Origin: Dicyema japonicum
Lineage: Eukaryota; Animalia; Dicyemida
Direction of reading: 5' to 3'
Assembly (NCBI GenBank): GCA_011109175.1
Contig: RDEW01000014.1
Coordinates: forward strand, 1,089,661-1,141,039
DNA length: 51,379 nucleotides
The notes under the pieces were generated by a model, which had not been told where the DNA came from, searched no databases, and saw nothing but the letters and a program-made list of their open reading frames with translations. The translations under genes and the position numbers were made by a program. Below, piece after piece: positions 530-50,320 of this stretch (position 1 is its first letter; every line of letters starts with the position of its first letter).

Positions 530-3200
530 TATTTTTATTTAACCCCAAGACCACCAGGAAAGATAGGTCAAAACTAACTAATTATGTGATCCCAGCCTCC
601 AGCAACATCCGAACTCTCTTTATTTGGTCTTCTGATGATCCAACCGCACTCCGGAAGCGTCTTCTCTTCCTTCTGCAAAGGAATTCAATCGGCGTGCATT
701 TTTTTGTTACCTACCGAAATTTCTCTCCATGGGCCACCTTTTCCTTGAGTGGGTTTCCCAGTTCCTTGCAGATACGTAAAAAACCCTGGCCTTTTTTTAA
801 CGTTGCCTCATCAGAAACGAAATCGCCAATGGGGATGTTTGTGTGGTGCATATTTCTCCGGCTGAAGGAGTTCAAATGGTCCACTCTCGAAGGGGGAATC
901 ACAAACTTCCAAGCGGAACAGGCTTATTCAATGGTCGGTACGATTACTTGTTGATAGACCTTGCTGATGCAAGCAGCCAAGGGGAAAGGGCTCTTATTTA
1001 TCATCGCATTCAGAATGTTCCATTTCCGAAGACCCTNCTCTCGAAGGGGGAATCACAAACTTCCATGGTCGGTACGATTACTTGTTGATAGACCTTGCTG
1101 ATGCAAGCAGCCGAGGGGAAAGGGCTCTTCTTTATCATCGCATTCAGAATGTTCCATTTCCGAAGACCCTTGGCGAGCACCTCCTCCACGTGACTCGAGA
1201 ACGTCAACAGAGAGTCGAAAACTACACCAAGGATCTTCTGGGTCCGTGTAGAAGGGATGGGAGTGTTTCCGATGAATATCTCAAGCCCACCTTTAAACCT
1301 TCTGTCCGTAGTGAATAATGTGAACTGAGACTTGGATGCTGATGCACATAACATATTTGCAGATAGCCAGTCACAAATTCGGTTTAGGTGTGTCTGAACA
1401 GTTACTACAGCCATGGGTCGAGATTTATTTCTTGCAGCGATAATTAGGTCGTCCGCATAGGATAAAAATATAGTGTCCTGGTCATTGGTAGTAGATAGGT
1501 CATGTAGAAATAGGTTGAAAAGGAGAGGAGATAAAGGTGAGTCTTGCGGGACTCCATTGGGGAGTAGTCTTGATTTTGAAGTGGTTTTATCAATCCGGGA
1601 GTAGTCTTTGAAACCATATTGAAACTCTGGTAGATGTAGAACAGGAGAGATGCACATTAACATAAGCTTTTCCAGTACTTTTAATAAAACACAAGTTATT
1701 TAGAAGAGGGAACGTCTTTTGGTTTTTTGGGCTTTAGAATTGGCGTAATCAAAGAGTTTTTCCATATATTAGGTAGCGTATGGTAGTTGATAGAGTCTTT
1801 GTACAGTCTTGATAGTATGGCCCGTGCCTGCGGTCCAAGGTGTTTGATGTGAATAGTGCAAATACCGTCGGGACCACAAGCATGAATGGGACGTAGCAAT
1901 TTAATAGCCTTGTCAACATCATCGGGGGTGAAGAAGGTGGAATATTGTTTTTGTTGTGGCCGACGCCGTTCAACAAGTGTAGAACGAGAAAAATTTTTAT
2001 GGCTAATCGATACGTAGTACTTCATAATCTTGTTTGCGAGTGCGAGTTTGCGTGCGGGTTCCGAAGCGTTGCGGGTAACGGCCTCAGTTCCGCGGTCCTC
2101 CTCTTTGATGAGGCTATTGATCCTTCTTAGCGTTTTCCAAAATGTGACGTGAACGTATGGAGTAGGAGTTGTTGGTCTGTGTTCTATTCCTCTTCAGCAC
2201 ATCTCGTTTCTTGATGAGTGACACACTGTGCAATGATATTCTTGGATTGAACTTTTTGTAAAAGGCGACGGGTATAAATAGTTTATCAGCGTTCAAAATG
2301 ATAACAAACAGAATCTTGGCCGTCTCCTCTACTGTACAATTAACCATAGTAAGGTCAAGGAGACTATTGTCCACATACGTCATGAAACCTTGCCAGTCAG
2401 CTTTCAAGTAATTTTTGAACTGTAGATCAACACGGTGAACAAATAGACCTTCCAAGTCTCAACACAATGGGGTTATGGTCGCTTGAGAAACCATAACAAA
2501 CATTCCATGAAATACATCTAGCCATAAAGGGAGAGCAGAGGGACAAGTCCGGGGATGTTGGACTGTCCCTTCTGCGGGACGGGATCCTTGTGTGGGTGTC
2601 CGGATCATTAAGGATAGTCAGATCTTTGAGCAGGGAAAGGATGTATTTGCGACTGTCGGCTGATTGAGTCCGGAGCCAGAGTGGATGTTTCGCGTTTAGG
2701 TATCCGCATGGTAGCAGATCATTTAGTCCACATAGTCTCAATAGGTTGGGGATGTAAGAAGTAGTACATGACCTCTGAGGCGGGATATAGACATTACACA
2801 GTGTGAAACATCTCGTCGAAGAAAAGGGAACTTCAATAGAAATCTGTTCCAGAATAAGATTCCCTTCGCAGAGAGAAGATACAGAAGGGGTGACATCCGT
2901 GAATTTTAGTTCATTCTTAACGATAGTCAATACTTTTCCTCCGAGACATTTTGTTCGGTCCCTGCAAAGTACACAATATCCGGGAAAACAAGGTGTTGGG
3001 GACTTTATAGAGAGCTTCGATTCTTGGATGAAGGCAATGTCCACTTTCAAATGGGGAAGAGGGATCGTATTTCAAATACTTTATTGCGGATTCCATTTAC
3101 ATTTAGTTTTAGAATACTCAACGTGCAGTTGGGTCCCGGATTAGGTTCTACATCACCAGACAGAAGTAGTAGAGAGAAAATACGAGGGAGGGAACATCGA
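530..3200 (-). mobile_element. Near full-length decayed APE-type LINE (2A-APE-RT, single ORF, multiple frameshifts and stops)
   Basis: APE motifs (IAFIQESK, GYLNAKHPLW, SDHNPI at 2427..3050) and RT motifs (GPDGI 1696..2025; GVPQDSPLSPLLFNLF, LSYADD 1010..1663). 3' tail CTGGGATCAC..GGGGTTAAATAAAA at 530-595. Confidence 0.9.
3131..3157 (-). other. 2A-like ribosome-skipping motif GDVEPNPGP at the LINE N-terminus
   Basis: LLLLSGDVEPNPGP, in frame and immediately upstream of the APE start (ILKLNVNGI). Matches D[V/I]ExNPGP. Confidence 0.85.
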
Positions 3201-6426: not shown

Positions 6427-9318
6427 TTAACTAAAACATTTTTCAAGAGAAGAAAAATGTTGACTCCTTTTTAGTTTTAATTCTTCAATCTCCTCAGCAC
6501 ACTGAGCCACCGTTCTTTCGATTCCAGTTGATTTATCAGCAAAGAATGCCTTAAAGTCATTAAGGAGGTCGTCAGTAGCCATATAATATGTGACACACTA
6601 ATAAATGCAGACTAACAAATACCTTAACAGAGAAGCCTAAAGTAGACACTTGAACATAATTAGAGAGAAATGAGTAATTTTTCTTATAAAATTCCCAAAA
6701 CTCAGACAAATTTTCCCTCCTCGATTTGAGTCCCTTTACCAAATAATTAATGTCTTGAGAACGAAACTTGTCCTATATAATTACAAAAGGTTACAGTCTT
6801 CATAAGCTCAAATATCCGTTCTATTCCGCCACATAACTGAATCCACCCCATTGATTGTATTAAATTAGATTTTGTTTCCGACCTCTCAACACGGTCTAGG
6901 AACTCAACCAGTCTATTAAAGTCATTATCAGATGCATTCCGCATTGCCGACTGGTAAACCTATTGCATTATAACAATACAACAACAGCAAGGGAAATGTT
7001 AGGGTCAACAATAGACTCACCGTTAGTAGTAATATCTAAGAATAGGTTATAACATTGAGAGTAAAAGTGATCATCCCCATACATTACCATTAACCCAAAT
7101 ATTTTAGCCCTAAGAAGACCCATTTGAGGATCTAAGTAATATTAATATAAAAAACCCTCATTCTGTTTTGCCCTCCACCCAACATGCTGATAAACTCCAG
7201 ACATGAGAAGATTCCTCACATATTGAATGAATTTGTCATTGAGAGGAGTTCCAGACAAAATTCTGTCTATTTCACAAATCCCATTAGCCAAAACTCCCCA
7301 AATATTGACATGGTAGATATTCTTGAACTTTTCAATAAGTTTGAAGACCATATCAAAGGTAATGTACCCAGAAAAGGCCTAAAATCAACTAAACCAGAAA
7401 ACCAAAGCGAATGTATCGTCCAATAGTGAAATCTTATCATTTTCAGACAAATACTGACAGCCTTCCAATAGCCTGGTGAAGAGAGCTTGGGAGTACTGCA
7501 CTCTAAAGAATCCATGAACGCCCGCATTGACCTGGATGTAAACAAAACACTAACTTTAATCCAACATGAGTCTGCAAGGTAATCAATATTAAAATCATCA
7601 CGTGCTTTATCAAGGACAACATATTTGATATTATCAGAAGCATGTTGAGAACAATATCCGATTGGAATCTTCCACAAAGTACCATCCTCCTCGTTTAGTC
7701 TGGAGGCTGTCTTAAAGGCCTCCTGTTGGAGAGTCAAAACCATATTTCCATTAACACAGGTACAATCAACCTACCATTATAACACAACAACCTTCACAAC
7801 AGGGTACCCACATTGAAGAGTGAAGGTATTCATTATACCAGCCACATCAAAACGAGGATCACTAAAGGAATCCCACAAATTCTTGGTGACTGTGTTGGAA
7901 TATGAAAATTCTGTTAAATATTTCTTTAGGGATTTCTTGAATTGCTAAAATAGTTATGGGACATTACATTCTCCCCAATAAAGTAGAACAGCATGGCTAT
8001 TACTGAGGATCCCTTAGCATATGAGATATCATCAAAAATTTCATCAATCATGGCTGGGTCGTCAATGAATACCTACAATGCATCATACTCAGGTACCTCT
8101 ACAGGATGAGTGTTCTTAAGTGAGTCACTTACCAGGGAAGTCATAAACTCCATTGTTAAAAACTGTGTTTCGAATTTATATTGAGGAAAGCATTGGGATG
8201 AACAGTAATACTCCATAAACGTGGCAAAACCTTCATTAAGCCACAAATCAGTCCACCAACCCTGTCATTATAGACTACAAAAACCATTGTGACCAGATTA
8301 CCAAACCACATATGAGCCAGTTCATGGGCAACTACAAGTGTTACTAATGATTTTGTCCTGACAGAACTCTGATCCTCATTAACCAACAATGTGGTCTCCC
8401 TAAAGGTGACTAACCCCCAGTTCTCCATAGCTCCTGAGGAAAAGTCAGGAATTGATACTAAATCCAACTTTGGCAGAGGATATTTAATGCCAAAAAATTC
8501 CTCATAAAATGAAAGGGACTTTGTGGCAACATTAAGGGCAAACTTCCCCTCATCAGACCTCCCAACAGGAGTATACACTCTTATCCTTACTTTATTTTCA
8601 CTAGTCCCCTCCACATAGTCGTAATGTCCTATAGTGAATGCTAGTAAATATGTGGACATGATCGGAGTAATCCCAAACTTATAGAGAACTCTTCCGTCAG
8701 TTTGACTATCTGAAGATTCGATTTCCTACAAATGACCAAAGAATAATACCATATTGGAGAGAACAATCCTGTCTTCAGGGGACACTACAGATAACTCGAA
8801 TTGTGCTTTCATATCGGGTTCATCAAAACATGGGAAGGCACGACGAGCATCGATTGGCTCAAGTAACACAAACAACCACCTCAAACTGTGTGGATACACC
8901 AAAACAGTTTTCTCCATTTAATTTGTATTTTATTTTGTAGAGACCAGCCATTTTTTCTGAAATAGGTCCATTAAAAGTAATGAAAATGTTGGCTTGTCCT
9001 TTGTTCTAAAATAATAATAATAAGGCAAACAAGGTTATTTTGTAGAATTAGGTCGACAGTCTGGGCAGACTCATCAAATTTCCAGGAGGCATCAAACTGT
9101 TTACCATCTCACAGTAATTTAATAATCAAACTTTGTGTAATATAAGCACAGGTTATATCAATGTCTACAACGTTCATTCTAACCATTTTTGATGGTTGGG
9201 AGACATTTGACACAATTTCCAAGTTTCCTTTGAATTTGAATGTTTCTAGATTAGGGTCGATGTGGAGTTTGTATATGGATGGTAGAATTGTTCTTGGGAG
9301 TCTTGCAAATGAAGACAT
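6427..9318 (-). CDS. NPEPPS: M1-family aminopeptidase, puromycin-sensitive aminopeptidase-like; 15 exons, 14 introns of 21-25 nt
   Basis: TQFE|PIDARRAFPCFDEP, GAMENWG, HELAH..W, WLNEG and YAKGS motifs. Introns at 9108-9131, 9006-9030, 8858-8879, 8726-8749, 8262-8284, 8073-8096, 7945-7967, 7771-7791, 7532-7554, 7379-7402, 7132-7155, 6960-6982 (or -6985), 6773-6794 and 6598-6622 give one continuous ORF to TAA at 6427. Family is secure; exact orthology less so. Confidence 0.9.
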
Positions 9319-9479
9319 TTTTGAACAATAAGTACTAGGGATCGATAATAACGTGGAATATACATATTATTTTATTTAAGGTAAACCATTTATTAAACAA
9401 TAACTAAATCAACTAAATTATCATAATTAATTAGAATTTTAATCCAATTTGGTGGTCTCGCCTATGAAAGGAGACTGGG

Positions 9480-11519: not shown

Positions 11520-14500
11520 TATTATTATTACCCCCAGGATCACTGGGTCAAAGAGAAAGAAATAAAAGTTCTCATCTAAGTGATCCCAGACCGACAAAGG
11601 AGAGGACGAGTCTGGCGGGGTCGAGAATCCTGAACAGCTCTTCTCATTGGACATGAAAATTTCTGTATGATTGTAGATAATTCGATAGTGTATGGATTAG
11701 AGGGCAGCTCGGTAAAATAGCCTCCTTTAAGAATTTCCGTTGTAATTAGATTAAGAAATTTTCAATGGACTGGATTTTGTGTTCTGGTCCAATTAACCTT
11801 ATTGCAGTCTCCTCGATTTCGGATAGTTTCAATGAGAAGGATCGTGAAATCTGCATTGCCCACGAAGGACTTGCATACGTCATCGTTGGTCGGATAAATT
11901 GTTCATAAATCGTGGCAAAGCTCCCAGTTTTGTCTCTAAGTGTTTTTGAGAGCACTTTTAAAATTCTCATTTTCTTCAGAGCAGAAGTGACTTTGTCTCA
12001 ACATGGCGGATAAAGTTGAGTCCCTGATCCTAGGTGACTTCCAAAATCCTTGGTGTTTTGTTAATAGGAATAGCTTGTTCTTCATAAAGATTTTTGGTTC
12101 GACACAGAGCTGTCTTTTGTAAGTGGTAAACAGCGTGACAGAAGACTGTTGTTGATGCGTCGAGTCTTCGCTTCGAAAGCCATAGTTCCAAGTTTTCAAG
12201 CATTTTTTCAGCGGACTGAGTCGCTGATTGAATGCTTCTGTCCTTGGAGGCAATAATGATATCGTCGGCATAGGAGAGGATTAGGAAGTTTTCATTACAG
12301 GTTTGTGGCATGTTGTTTATGTAGAGATTGAAGAGTTGGGGTGATAGTGGGGAGCCTTGAGGGACTCCATTTGGGAAATAGCGAGATCTTGATTTGATGT
12401 TGCATAGGAGAGGATTAGACAGTTTTCATTACAGGTTTGTGGCATGTCGTTTATGTAGAGATTGAAGAGTTGGGGTGATAGTGGGGAGCCTTGAGGGACT
12501 CCATTTGGGAAATAGAGAGATCTTGATTTGATGTTAATGCAGAGTACTTGTGCTCGTCTTCCATTTAGGAAGTTTCCAAGCCAAAGTTTCAAGTTTGAAT
12601 GGATGTTGGTTTCAAATATTTTCTTTGTTAGGAGTTTCCTAGGGAGTGAGTCGAACGCTTTTGTGATGTCCACGGATATAAGTACTGTGTTCTGATGGGG
12701 TTTGTGGGAGTTAAATCCTTCCACAATGAATTGTGTGAGGGTTGTAAGGTGTGTTGTTGTCGAATGATTATCCAGGAATCCGTTTTGGGTCGGAGGTATT
12801 GAGATTGAGTCCTGTATTTTTTCCAAAACAAGCCTTTCAAGGATCCTTGAGACCGGACTTAGAATAGATATTGGGTGATAGGAAGATGGTTCATCTATTT
12901 GTTTGTTGGGTTTTCGGATAGGTCTGATTAGAGACTTCTTCCATATTTCAGGGATTGTATTTGTGTTGATGGATAGGTTGAAGATATAGGATAATAGTTC
13001 CAGGGTTAGATGACCTAGGTGCTTCAGTTCACATGTGGTTATGTTGTCTGGTCCTTTAGACTCTGAGTTATTGGCCTTGGATATGGCTCTGCGAACATCC
13101 TGACTAGTAAATGGGATCCAGTCATCGGAGCGTTTCGGTTCAATCTTTTTCAGGAATACTTTTTGTTTTTTTGAAAACTTCTTGTAGGATATAGACCAGG
13201 GGTTCTCAACCTTTTTAGCTCAAGGGCCAAATCGATAATTGAGTATCTTTGCGGGCCGCACAAAAAATATTTTATTTGATTAAAGAAAAAAGGCTTTATT
13301 ACGTAATAAGAGAATCAATGTGAGACTTGATTTTGCTTGGCGTCTACTATTTTATCGAAACGAGGAGTAAAGTTCAAAGACGATGTACGTAAAAGTTGAA
13401 TTAGGTGTTCATTAGTCAATCGATTTCGATGCTTACTTTTTATTCGCGTATGTTTACTGAAAAGAGCTTCACATGCATACGTTGATCCTAAGAGTGATGC
13501 ATTTTTTTGATCGACCAAGTTCGGATATTTCCATTGTGGAATTCGACTCCAAAAATCCAATAGTTCACTTGACTTAAATAGCGCGGTAAGTTGTAAATCT
13601 GCCTGCATTTCAATTAGCTCCAGCTGATATACATATGGAGCGGTTGCAGCATCTGTTTCCATAGGTGACGAAAATATTTTCATAATAGGTATAGCTTTTT
13701 TAAAATCATTAAAACGTGTTTTGAATTCATCGATTAAGTCACTAATAACAGAGGTATATTTTTCATATGATCCATCTTCTTTGTGGTTTGAAAGTATTGG
13801 AAAATGAATGGTAACTCTACTTGCAATTTGTATTTTGAAAAGGTGTAGTTTTTCGATAAATGCAGAAACCAGTCCATCGATTAAGTCACTAATAACAGAG
13901 GTATATTTTTCATATGATCCATCTTCCCTGTGGTTTGAAAGTATTGGAAAATGAATGGTAACTCTACTTGCAATTTGTATTTTGAAAAGGTGTAGTTTTT
14001 CGATAAATGCAGAAACCAGTCCGTATAATTCATGACATAGTTTATTCTTACCCTGCAGAGAAGTATTCAAAATCGAAAGGTGTGTAGAAATATCAACCAT
14101 AAATGCTAAATCCGCAATCCACTCCTTATCAGTAAGCTGAAGATAGAATATCTTATTGTCAATAAAATTTATAATCTCCGGGAGAAGGTCATAAAATCTA
14201 AATGCGATTTATTTAAAATTTATACAACCTTTTCAGACATGCTGCCCGACTCAACCATCGTACGGTTGTATGCATGAGCAAATCTCCATACTCACATCAA
14301 CATCCTCGAGAAATTTCTTAAAATTGCGGTGATTTAAAGCACGAGAGAGAATAAAGTTTCTGTTACATGGTCCATTTTTATAGATTTTGCAGCTAAATTT
14401 TCTTGATGTAGTATGCAGTGATGCCAAATCACAGGACTCATATCCAGCTACGAGACCTTGAAACCCAGTTTTCCATCCAACCATAGAAGGACATCCATCT

Positions 14501-27669: not shown

Positions 27670-29330
27670 TCGAGAGAAACTGGTCGAGGATCCTGGAGAA
27701 ACTAGTCCTAAAAGTTATTCGCCCTTCTCTCCCACAACCTACATTCCAACATGGCTTCAAGGAAGGATTATCAACAACCTCCTTCCTAACGACATTAATG
27801 AAGTTCATAACTGAAGGACACAAGAACAAGCCAAAACAAGAAAAATCGGTCATATGTACGATCGACATTCAAAAAGCTTTCGACTCTGTCCCAAAGAAGA
27901 TCCTCATACGAAAAATATTTTTGACAAAAATTGATGCACCATTAAAGTTATGGTTAGCAAATTTCGTAAGTGGACGCCGAGGAAAAGTGTCCGTCGGAAA
28001 CAAGAGTTTCAGATCGGGATTATTACCCAATGGTGTACCCCAAGGATCTCCTCTGTCACCAATCCTTTTTAATTTGTTTTTGAATGATCTCCCCGTACCT
28101 ATGAATAATAATGACATGCTACTTTCCTATGCCGATGACATAGTTGTCGCATCTAGGGACGTAAATGTCATGCTAAAGAAAGACTACAAGGAATACTAAA
28201 TAACATATATGGATGGTTGTGCGATAATCGACTAAATGCATGTTCCGAAAAGTCAGCATGAAAAAGACCCCCGTCCGTATAGAAAATACGTGGGATCACG
28301 GTCGGAGCATCGACAATAAATGGCCCGATTATTGAGAGATGCCGGGATCACCTGAATATTAGTTATTGGTTAAGACGGTGTTTCTTTGGCTTAAATAATA
28401 ATAATAAAAAAAATTCAAACAACACCGGTGGTACTTAACTAACTAAACAGAACTACTCACAATTATAAAGAACGGTATACTTATCATTGGAGTCGACAGA
28501 CCTCAAAACTTTTGGTCTCAGACGATACCATGAAGAAGATTACCATCAAGCTGTTCCTGTCTCTTTGGATTAATTTGATTAACTTATACATTCCACCACA
28601 AGGATTCTGCCCAAAATCCTACACCTCAAACCTACCCAGCTTCTCAGCACTAAAGAACGCTTTAATGTGCTGCTACCTTAATGCACGACACTCCGTTTAG
28701 TTTGCTTCATTGTCTTCTGACAGTCGAGGTGAGTTCATCAAAATGGTCTTAATCAAACCGAAAAAAATGAACCTTACAAAGAACTATTCTCAGACAAGCA
28801 GGTCTCAGAAGTTATCGTCGGATTAAAGAGCTCATTATTATTTTCAATTCACCTAAAACACCTAAGCAAATACGCAATTAGCAACCTAACGGAAATTTTT
28901 AACCTGTCCGTTAACTCATAAGGCCGGAAAACCAAAAAAAATCAAAGTTTATACATACAATCTCATTGACCTCTACTATATCAAAAGTGTTGGAAAAGTT
29001 GATTGAAATTACTCATTCCCTAACTCAACTGAATTTCCAACACGGATTCTGTTCTGGAAGATCAACCACGACTTTCTTATCAACGCTTTCGCAGTTCATT
29101 GCGGATGGATTCAACACTACCCCAAAACACATGCGGACAACGATGGTCTCGATTGACATCAACAAGGCTTTGAGTCGGTACCAAGGAAACATTTAATTGG
29201 AAAAATCTTTGATTCAAAAATTCGCCTTAACTTGAAGCTATGGGTTGTAGAGACTCTTGTCATGTACACATTAACAATATAAATAAGGTATTTATTAGCA
29301 TTCCTTGTATTTATCTGGAATACAGCTAAA
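27670..29330 (+). mobile_element. Two or more decayed APE-LINE fragments
   Basis: QHGF, IDIQKAFDS, GVPQGSPLSP, SYADD (27798..28199); 3' motif at 28342; a further QHGF..IDINKA at 28966..29196. Confidence 0.8.
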
Positions 29331-32457: not shown

Positions 32458-33660
32458 TTATGTGGAGTACTCACTTGACCAACATATTTTCATTGTCACT
32501 TTCATCGTATCTAGAATAAACGTGTTGTACCCTTTACTTCCATGAAATAGATAAAAAGGGGTTTTCTTCGTTGAAGAATGCAAGCTTTTATTATAATTAT
32601 ACACTACCAAGTCCAAACATGAAATCCATTCTTTATTTTGTTGTATAAAAGGTTTTTTTTGTAACCAACGAGTCAACGTTTGGTTACAACGTTCTACTTG
32701 GCCCTGGGATTGAGGATGCCTTGGACGACTAAACTTTTGTAAAATGTTAAATTCTTTGCATAAAGAATTAACTAGTTTATTTTTAAACTCTTTCCCATTG
32801 TCAGATTGTAAAATCTGAGGAGCTCCAAAACAATAAAAGATAGATCTTAAAGATGAACAAATAACAGTTGCTTCTTTTGAGACGATCGCTTTTGCAAAAC
32901 AAAATTTGGAATATACGTCAATAACATTAAATATCTATTTAAAGCCATCATTGGCCTGGGACCATCGACTTAAATCCACCAAGTCCATTTGAAATATTTC
33001 TCGAGGAAACTTTGCTTTAATGTGAATCATAGGAATTTGAGCTTTTAAAGGTTGGCTTTGTGCACATGCTGTGCATTCGGAACATACATCACGTATAATG
33101 GATTTTTTGATGGTGAAATAATAATTGTAAAATTCTTTCAGTTTATTGATTCCATAATGATTGGTCAAATGCTGTTTCATGCATTCTATCTTCATAGTTT
33201 GAATATCGTCCTGAGCAATAACACGTTTATGAGCCTCACGTATAATGGATTTTTTGATGGTGAAATAATAATTGTAAAATTCCTTCAGTTTATTAATTCC
33301 ATAATGAGTGGTCAAATGCTGTTTCATGCATTCTATCTTCATAGTTTGAACATCGTCCTGAGCACTAACACGTTTATGAGCCTCATCATTTGTAAAGAGT
33401 TTAGAATCTTCCAACAAGAAAAAATTGGCTTTCTTAATAAACCGAAATTTTTGCATTCGTGTAAAATTTTGGTCGATGATTATGCATTGTAGATATGAAA
33501 CAATATCATCCTCTTGGCCAGTCCTGATCATACTTTTAATATGCATTTTTCTAACACAGATAAAAAATTTTGGTCGATGATTATGCATTGTAGATATGAA
33601 ACAATATCATCCTCTTGGCCAGTCCTGATCATACTTTTAATATGCATTTTTCTAACACAG
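32458..33660 (-). mobile_element. Retroviral-type DDE integrase without recognisable gag/RT (Ginger/Gin/KRBA2-SCAND3-like)
   Basis: H..HYG..CTAC zinc finger, FQMDLVDL, ILQSDNGKEF, PQSQGQVERCNQT, YN.S.HSST.KTPF. Confidence 0.85.
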
Positions 33661-48817: not shown

Positions 48818-49429
48818 CTAATTAAGAGTGTCTCTCACTAAATTTTGAACTTTCTTTTTAAAAAGGACAATATCATCTCTGAAATCCTGAGCAGCCTGAA
48901 GATTAGCAGGACTCTCCGTGTTAGGTTCTAAACTTAATAATCAACCAAACCTGATAAAAGAGAAACAACAGACAACAATATACTCGATATTGACTGAGCA
49001 GCACACCAACGTTCCTGACTCTTCTCATAAAAGTTAGGATCATCCCCCGGTGGGTGAAGAATGGACACACACACTCTGCCATCCTCATAGACAACAGTAA
49101 AAATCATATATTACTGTTGGGGTGGTATATCGGCGTTATAAAACGTAGCTCAGGAGGTTCAATTGGGTACGCACTTGAAAATTTGAGTTGTGCCTTGAAT
49201 ATTCCGTCCTCATAGCACGTACCTGCTGGTCCTCTACTAAATAGAACAACTAAGATGACATTATGACGACGTTCCACATGAACAGGTTCTCGTCACTTTC
49301 TGGCTCAGCAAATATGTTTGGCACTTGTTCCTGTCGCAGTTCTACATTTATAGGTATATCATTATTTTTAATATAATATCATCAATAGTTACGCTGTAAT
49401 TCTAGAAATAAACGACGTCTAGCATGCAT
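48818..49429 (-). CDS. UBE2G2: Ubiquitin-conjugating enzyme E2, UBE2G/Ubc7 family (missed by the ORF track); 4 introns, one GT-TG
   Basis: RRLFLELQ|[13 protein letters not shown]|[25 protein letters not shown]|[34 protein letters not shown]|EPN.ESPAN. Introns 49342-49392, 49234-49259, 49092-49114, 48928-48950. The acidic loop fits Ubc7/G2 best; Cdc34/G1 not excluded. Confidence 0.85.
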
Positions 49430-49559
49430 CACTAAACAGATCTAGAAAGTACTAATCGACAATATATTATTCAATTTATTATTTTTGGTTAACCACATTA
49501 AATTATTTATTTTTATTAAAATTCATAAAAAAGTTAATTAAGATAGGATCACAATATCA

Positions 49560-50320
49560 TAATTCTAATCTATTCAGACAATCTCAATATTGTCACTAAG
49601 GATCCACCATACCATACTGTATATTGACTATCTGACAATATTTTATCTGTATTGGTACCCAAATCTGAGTTTACCTTCTCTACAAGCTGTTTATTCATTG
49701 GCGATATCCACATCACATCTACGAAATGGCATCACTTTCGACAACTTAATGACGTTTACTCGTCACAGCGCGTAGGTCACGGGGCTTCATAGGTGGTATG
49801 TTTTTAAAAACATATTGCACAGAAGACCTACATCAACAGGTTTTATCTTTAAATCATTGTTTCTGGGCATCGAAAAAGCTTGTTTCGCTTGGAAATTCCT
49901 CCCTTCCTTTAAGAAGTATGTCACCTCATTCCAACGGAAAACATAAGAGGATCAATTAGTACTTTATTTTAATAATTCCAGCAGAAACAATGATCAAGGT
50001 TTCCCGATAGCGATTAGGAAAATATATGTCCTATCGTGGACAGAAGAATAAATTAATTCAGATCACTCTCAAAATCCTTCACATCCTTTTAAAAATAAGA
50101 CACCATCCAAACGAGAAATTTATTTGAGCTAATCATGGACTACTTTATTGATTGCCAGTGAGACTTTCAAAATAATTAACTCTCTTGAACATCTTGGACT
50201 AGGAGTTAGATTATTTGGAATTTTGCCCAAGATACAAGAAGCCTTTCCCTTCAATCCAGTATTCCCAAACTAACCATAGTAGAAATCTTGGCATGGGCAC
50301 TGGGATCACTTTATTTATTT
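49560..50320 (+). mobile_element. Decayed APE-LINE 3' fragment
   Basis: GITFDNLMTFTRH motif; ends with CTGGGATCAC at 50300. Confidence 0.55.

Follow-up and report, generated by a model that had tools for sequence, protein, structure and literature searches.

To our knowledge, a 3' terminal AG is held to be an absolute rule for U2-type introns. The stretch of Dicyema japonicum DNA analysed here, a window of 51,379 nucleotides, raises the question of whether an animal spliceosome can dispense with it: a gene for a ubiquitin-conjugating enzyme (E2) is interrupted, right beside its HPN motif, by 23 nucleotides that begin with GT and end with TG. How such a segment is to be read, as an intron that is productively removed or as the mark of a failing allele, can be approached through the anatomy of the gene, the history of the intron position and the transcript of a neighbouring gene.

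An E2 gene interrupted at an ancient intron position

The gene and its parts, as given by the spliced translation, are the following (a slash in a sequence marks an intron boundary here and below, except in the degenerate position A/G and between the arms of an inverted repeat).

48818..49429, minus strand: UBE2G2/Ubc7-type E2 gene, 5 exons, 489-nt CDS, 162 aa
49429-49393, 49341-49260, 49233-49115, 49091-48951 and 48927-48818, minus strand: E2 exons 1 to 5
49342..49392, minus strand: E2 intron 1, 51 nt, GT-AG, position conserved in Helobdella
49234..49259, minus strand: E2 intron 2, 26 nt, GT-AG, with a TAG/TAG tandem acceptor
49092..49114, minus strand: E2 intron 3, predicted 23-nt GT...TG micro-intron, phase 1
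48928..48950, minus strand: E2 intron 4, 23 nt, GT-AG

Taking out the 23-nt segment together with the three GT-AG introns (51, 26 and 23 nt) leaves a complete open reading frame, whose 162-aa product carries HPN and the catalytic Cys along with the acidic loop known from the UBE2G/Ubc7 group, and whose exons match human UBE2G2 (4lad_A) in PDB alignment. Beyond the TG-ended intron the gene has no further lesion, and no second E2 copy lies in the 51,379-nt window, an intact paralogue beside a silent copy here being what an earlier, sequence-only reading of this DNA had said would tell against its case. In intron 2, the 26-nt form corresponds to the orthologue boundary and the 23-nt form would add one Arg, so that the tandem may serve as an alternative acceptor of the NAGNAG type.

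On the minus strand, 49114..49092 reads GTAATATATGATTTTTACTGTTG, with CAC CCC AAC A upstream and TC TAT GAG GAT GGC downstream; it contains no internal AG and its 3' end is CTGTTG. Excision of the 23 nt joins HPN to IYEDGRVC, the split codon A/TC giving Ile. Further on, AGs at +8, +16 and +18 would define alternative introns of 31, 39 and 41 nt. The first two are out of frame and hit stop codons, the 41-nt form yields HPN-M-CVSILH, in which IYEDGRV is lost just ahead of the catalytic Cys, and retention gives HPNSNI and then a stop. Among the excisions of 23, 31, 39 and 41 nt and retention, it is thus solely the 23-nt excision that restores a productive protein. Sequence and translation here agree with the sequence-only reading on the AG-free segment and its unique restoration of HPN-I-YEDGRVC, on the two frame shifts and the loss of IYEDGRV at the next AGs, and on the broken frame upon retention.

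Set against what defines a U2-type intron, the donor GTAATA is a 5' GT with a purine at +3, and the position and phase are common to orthologous introns; the 3' terminal AG is absent. The A of UUUUUAC, 5 nt ahead of the 3' end, is a candidate branch point. The length equals that of E2 intron 4 (23 nt) and is close to those of the introns of the neighbouring EB1 gene (22 and 23 nt).

The history of this position was examined by mapping the exons of the UBE2G2 genes of Helobdella robusta and Trichoplax. Aligned with 4lad_A, exon 3 of the Dicyema gene covers residues 43-81, up to the N of HPN, and exon 4 covers residues 83-127, from the Y onwards, so that exactly one residue is left for the split codon A/TC. 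In the gene of Helobdella, an annelid (leech), each of the four positions with an intron in Dicyema has one too, and its intron 3 (CAC CCC AAC A/GTCAGT...ACGCAG/TC TAC AAA GAT GGC) divides the same codon in phase 1, as does intron 3 of Trichoplax (...ACAG/TT TAT CCA). An identical boundary appears in read-through fragments of other animals that start ...V-YPDGRVC. A comparison with the orthologous intron of relatives, which the sequence-only reading had suggested, has therefore borne it out in position and in phase. This shared position and phase indicate an intron rather than a random-site insertion or a lesion, and the exact match of the 23-nt excision to them is far beyond chance. On these grounds the segment is judged to be orthologous to an intron of early metazoan date, which has shrunk to 23 nt and whose AG has turned into TG.

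Genomic DNA, and a transcript of the neighbouring EB1 gene

Two sequencing runs (X1 and X2) have the character of genomic DNA, from a haplotype about 1% diverged from the window. Their contigs are colinear with it over 48731-49460 (7 mismatches, 0 gaps), so the intron 3 segment is present in the second haplotype as well, the colinearity speaking to its length and not to the T at 49093. Outside this stretch, the X2 haplotype contig differs from the window by a 209-nt indel just downstream of the E2 gene (48522-48730) and by an 8-nt deletion at 48377.

The transcript of the E2 gene itself was sought in RNA and protein records. A search among RNA-type runs found none containing the gene, and the runs of unknown kind that contain it proved to be DNA. 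A 2017 run labelled "DNA?" (X5) covers only genic parts and repeats and behaves as a transcriptome; 39% of the E2 gene's sampled words occur in it, and no X5 contig was placed on the gene. Placement needed 90% likeness, and a fully spliced E2 contig, with about 20% gaps, falls below that threshold, so that the missing X5 coverage over the gene is uninformative. From the protein collection, word-index queries with guide-plus-exon alignments and with the 57-aa exon-4 ORF did not return the spliced E2 of Dicyema, which by local scoring would be expected at 235 bits, about rank 10, in one guide-plus-exon query. A representative protein search with exon 4 gave a best identity of 76%, and an exact-sequence look-up of the exon-4 ORF found no record.

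The RNA support comes from EB1, a gene about 5 kb from E2 intron 3, in which two introns are of interest.

43677..43699, minus strand: EB1 CH-domain intron, 23 nt, GT...TG, with RNA support and exon homology
43807..43828, minus strand: EB1 partner intron, 22 nt, GT-AG, within the same transcript contig

EB1 exon 2 aligns to residues 56-89 of EB3 (9f3r_S) and exon 3 starts at residue 90. An X5 contig of 848 nt begins 12 nt before the start codon of EB1 and, over 43480-44006, sets 482 letters against 527 window bases, with 2 mismatches and 45 gaps; 45 is the sum of the two predicted introns (22 + 23). The bin depths of 47.2, 37.9 and 30.5, at a contig depth of 48, correspond to 197/200, 158/200 and 127/200 and place 3 gap bases at or before 43679 and 42 within 43680-43879, which fits gaps at 43677-43699 and 43807-43828. 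Two other outcomes were considered and rejected: with retention of the intron the first bin would read 48, against the 47.2 observed, and if an in-frame GT-AG intron of 38 nt were used instead, the depth of that bin would fall to 43.7 and the gaps would add up to 60.

In EB1, then, an in-frame AG is available 15 nt beyond the TG, and the gap in the assembled transcript ends at the TG. In the EB1 stretch the X1 and X2 DNA differs from the window at 43524 and 43695 only, the latter being an A>T change at intron position 5 with the TG kept, so that the EB1 TG is confirmed by independent DNA. Ligation at this TG despite the AG 15 nt further on is thus supported, and the Dicyema spliceosome is able to use a TG acceptor.

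Readings of the TG end

Human TG 3' splice sites are used only with an AG within 28 nt and never as the sole acceptor (Szafranski et al., 2007; PMC2374985), and human AG>TG acceptor mutants switch to nearby AGs with no splicing at the TG (PMC2374985). The likeness of the Dicyema intron to these TG-AG tandems extends to its GT-TG ends, the pyrimidine at -3 and the presence of AGs inside the 28-nt range, at +8, +16 and +18 in this case. The differences are that the human TG is a minor or alternative site beside a productive AG, whereas here the TG yields the only productive mRNA; that the assembled EB1 transcript uses TG; and that the +1 base is T here instead of a purine. Counted against productive splicing at the TG of intron 3 are the AG merely 8 nt downstream, given the activation of nearby AGs in the human mutants, the failure of the protein-collection queries to return the spliced product, and a stable stem that sequesters the donor. 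On balance, intron 3 is probably spliced out productively at its TG. The sequence-only reading had gone further and made TG the sole acceptor at the modal intron length; the modal length stands, as does the use of TG, through the EB1 RNA, and "sole" is unproven because the exonic AGs at +8, +16 and +18 fall inside the 28-nt limit of the human tandems.

In spliceosome structures, the final G of the intron pairs with its first G, while the branch A is touched by the A at -2. A more far-reaching reading, a little less likely than not, is a dicyemid spliceosome with a relaxed 3' site, in which ligation in introns of 22-23 nt would be set mainly by the distance from donor and branch, the final G alone would be needed and TG would be constitutive in many conserved genes. 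The reading we favour is that intron 3 is removed by an ordinary U2-type spliceosome from the donor GUAAUA, with the likely branch A in UUUUUAC, 5 nt before the 3' end. The exons would be ligated after UUG, the G lying at the donor and branch distance used for introns of 22-26 nt, as if by a distance ruler. The U at -2 would forgo one contact and keep the G-G pair; an early AG-dependent step might employ the exonic AG at +8, +16 or +18, and these AGs, at least 8 nt further on, would yield dead products if used for ligation.

The strongest competitor, itself unlikely, is a null or leaky allele. Under this explanation the AG>TG change would be recent and lie in the reference haplotype, the transcripts would retain the intron or lose 31 nt and be degraded, and the other haplotype or another copy would supply the enzyme. 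Human AG>TG mutants act in this way (PMC2374985), an AG is present at +8, the sample is polymorphic (about 1% across the E2 gene), and the spliced product was not found in the protein collection. However, EB1 is ligated at its TG even with an in-frame AG 15 nt downstream, the E2 gene is otherwise intact and the window holds no paralogue to stand in for it.

More doubtful is a choice of acceptor that depends on the hairpin into which the ends of intron 3 can fold, and without which the TG would not reach the catalytic centre in the right way.

49111..49119, minus strand: hairpin 5' arm, CAACA/GUAA, the final 5 exon and first 4 intron bases
49092..49100, minus strand: hairpin 3' arm, UUACUGUUG, the final 9 intron bases, TG included

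The arms (CAACAGTAA / TTACTGTTG) are complementary at 9 of 9 positions around a 10-nt loop, so that the perfect 9-bp inverted repeat described in the sequence-only reading is there, and the RNA fold has -9.5 kcal/mol with z = -3.9 against shuffled sequences. The stem terminates exactly at the acceptor, and EB1 too has a weak helix between exon end and intron end. That helix is, however, in another register and its fold is non-significant (z = -1.4); the three canonical introns of the E2 gene likewise fold no better than expected, the z values running from +0.8 to -1.4 with the EB1 GT-TG intron included. The window has 13 positions at which a perfect inverted repeat of 9 bp encloses a loop of up to 20 nt, where Markov simulations give 7.9 +/- 3.6, and so the hairpin is real yet not in itself beyond chance. 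Further, the stem contains the donor GUAA and has to open for the donor to be recognised, and it pairs intron -1 with exon -5, so that the reacting groups are not lined up. The proposed role of the hairpin in uniting donor and acceptor is weakened on each of these counts: the buried donor, the register, the lack of such a structure in EB1 and the chance density.

The hairpin is probably an incidental by-product or a mutational scar, and not a splicing requirement. An ancestral TAG would make the repeat 8/9, with the sole mismatch at position -2, and the exon arm CCC AAC A is constrained by coding and identical in Helobdella. TTG may plausibly have arisen from TAG by quasi-palindrome correction.

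That the TG is an error of base calling or assembly, with an AG as the real sequence at 49093, is very improbable. This reading draws on the fact that the agreement with X1 and X2 covers the length of the segment and not this base; it would need to strike exactly position -2, and the EB1 TG is confirmed in two DNA runs and one RNA contig.

UBE2G2 is an enzyme of ER-associated degradation (ERAD), and xbp-1 introns are 23-26 nt long. Even so, non-spliceosomal excision by IRE1 and RtcB, of the XBP1 type, is the least likely reading: the size is fitting, a hairpin is present and CUGUUGU matches the loop motif CNGNNGN, but the 5' cut would fall after A instead of G, cuts at the consensus would take out 19 nt and so break the frame, a single stem stands in place of twin 7-nt loops, EB1 has the same kind of intron and is unrelated to ER stress, and spliceosomal introns have occupied this site since ancient times.

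The U12 consensus is (A/G)TATCCTT at the donor and TCCTTAAC at the branch; a U12-type intron was rejected, the donor here being GTAATATA with no such branch consensus. A ciliate internal eliminated sequence (IES) was rejected too, as a TA-bounded excision leaves the frame unrestored. No Rfam or tRNA match was found in the window.

Ultra-short introns and the choice of the 3' splice site

The D. japonicum genome has a GC content of 36.7%, consists of repeats to 48.9% and has introns that average 38 bp (PMC6736024), and the only animals with introns below 30 bp are D. japonicum and the myxobolid myxozoans, according to a 2026 paper in which their intron signals are reduced to GTa...AG and non-canonical ends are unmentioned (PMC13644364). 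The window fits this picture, with about 36% GC, introns of 22-26 nt, very high-copy repeats and fragments of LINE and hAT elements.

Several of its other features may be recorded here. Very high-copy repeats at 44080-44279, 45080-45479 and 46680-48079 have summed contig depths 100-2000x those of the unique flanks and include many "90-95% diverged" copies, and an ORF inside one of them (47479-47892) has no Pfam match. Transposon remnants comprise a LINE endonuclease and reverse transcriptase (1013-3047, minus strand), a further reverse transcriptase fragment (27798-28196, plus strand), a hAT dimerisation domain (13318-14100, minus strand) and an H2C2 integrase-type zinc finger (32938-33588, minus strand). 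An M1-family aminopeptidase gene at about 6439-9321 on the minus strand (Peptidase_M1, E = 1.6e-34 for one exon) appears to be split by many micro-introns. Directly upstream of the E2 gene and on the same strand, at about 49570-49700, a gene ends in ...YTVWYGGSLVTILRLSE and a stop codon; judged by eye, this end resembles that of an actin-related protein. Across the window, a census of acceptors by ORF joining passed about 22% of candidates, which equals the chance expectation, and a dynamic-programming gene finder based on codon usage was too weak, missing even the E2 gene.

Among the known systems close to intron 3, the ultra-short U2-type introns of Dicyema and the myxobolids share with it a length of 22-26 nt, the GTa donor, A residues near the 3' end and positions conserved with other animals, and differ in that the published logos have AG as the 3' signal whereas intron 3 ends in TG. 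The non-conventional introns of euglenids also have a non-AG end and a helix that unites the intron ends; here, in contrast, the intron belongs to an animal, begins with a normal GT and lies at an ancient spliceosomal position, and EB1 lacks the structure. The XBP1/HAC1 introns cut by IRE1 offer a likeness in a small (23-nt) structured intron and a gene of ER quality control; the cleavage consensus and twin loops have no counterpart here, and consensus cuts leave the frame broken. Since GT-TG introns of U2 type are known, what is new is probably the use of TG as the productive site in ultra-short introns.

The gene models of Dicyema were built with aligners that accepted canonical junctions only (PMC6736024). 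In Dicyema, and probably in other parasites with tiny introns, gene models are likely to be broken at GT-TG introns, and apparent completeness could drop as a result. If the 3' site is indeed relaxed, Dicyema would be the first animal, and its spliceosome the first U2-type system, with non-AG acceptors used regularly as the sole productive sites. Productive TG in introns too short for the usual 3' signals would moreover provide a handle on how the second step of splicing chooses its site, by the identity of the bases or by distance.
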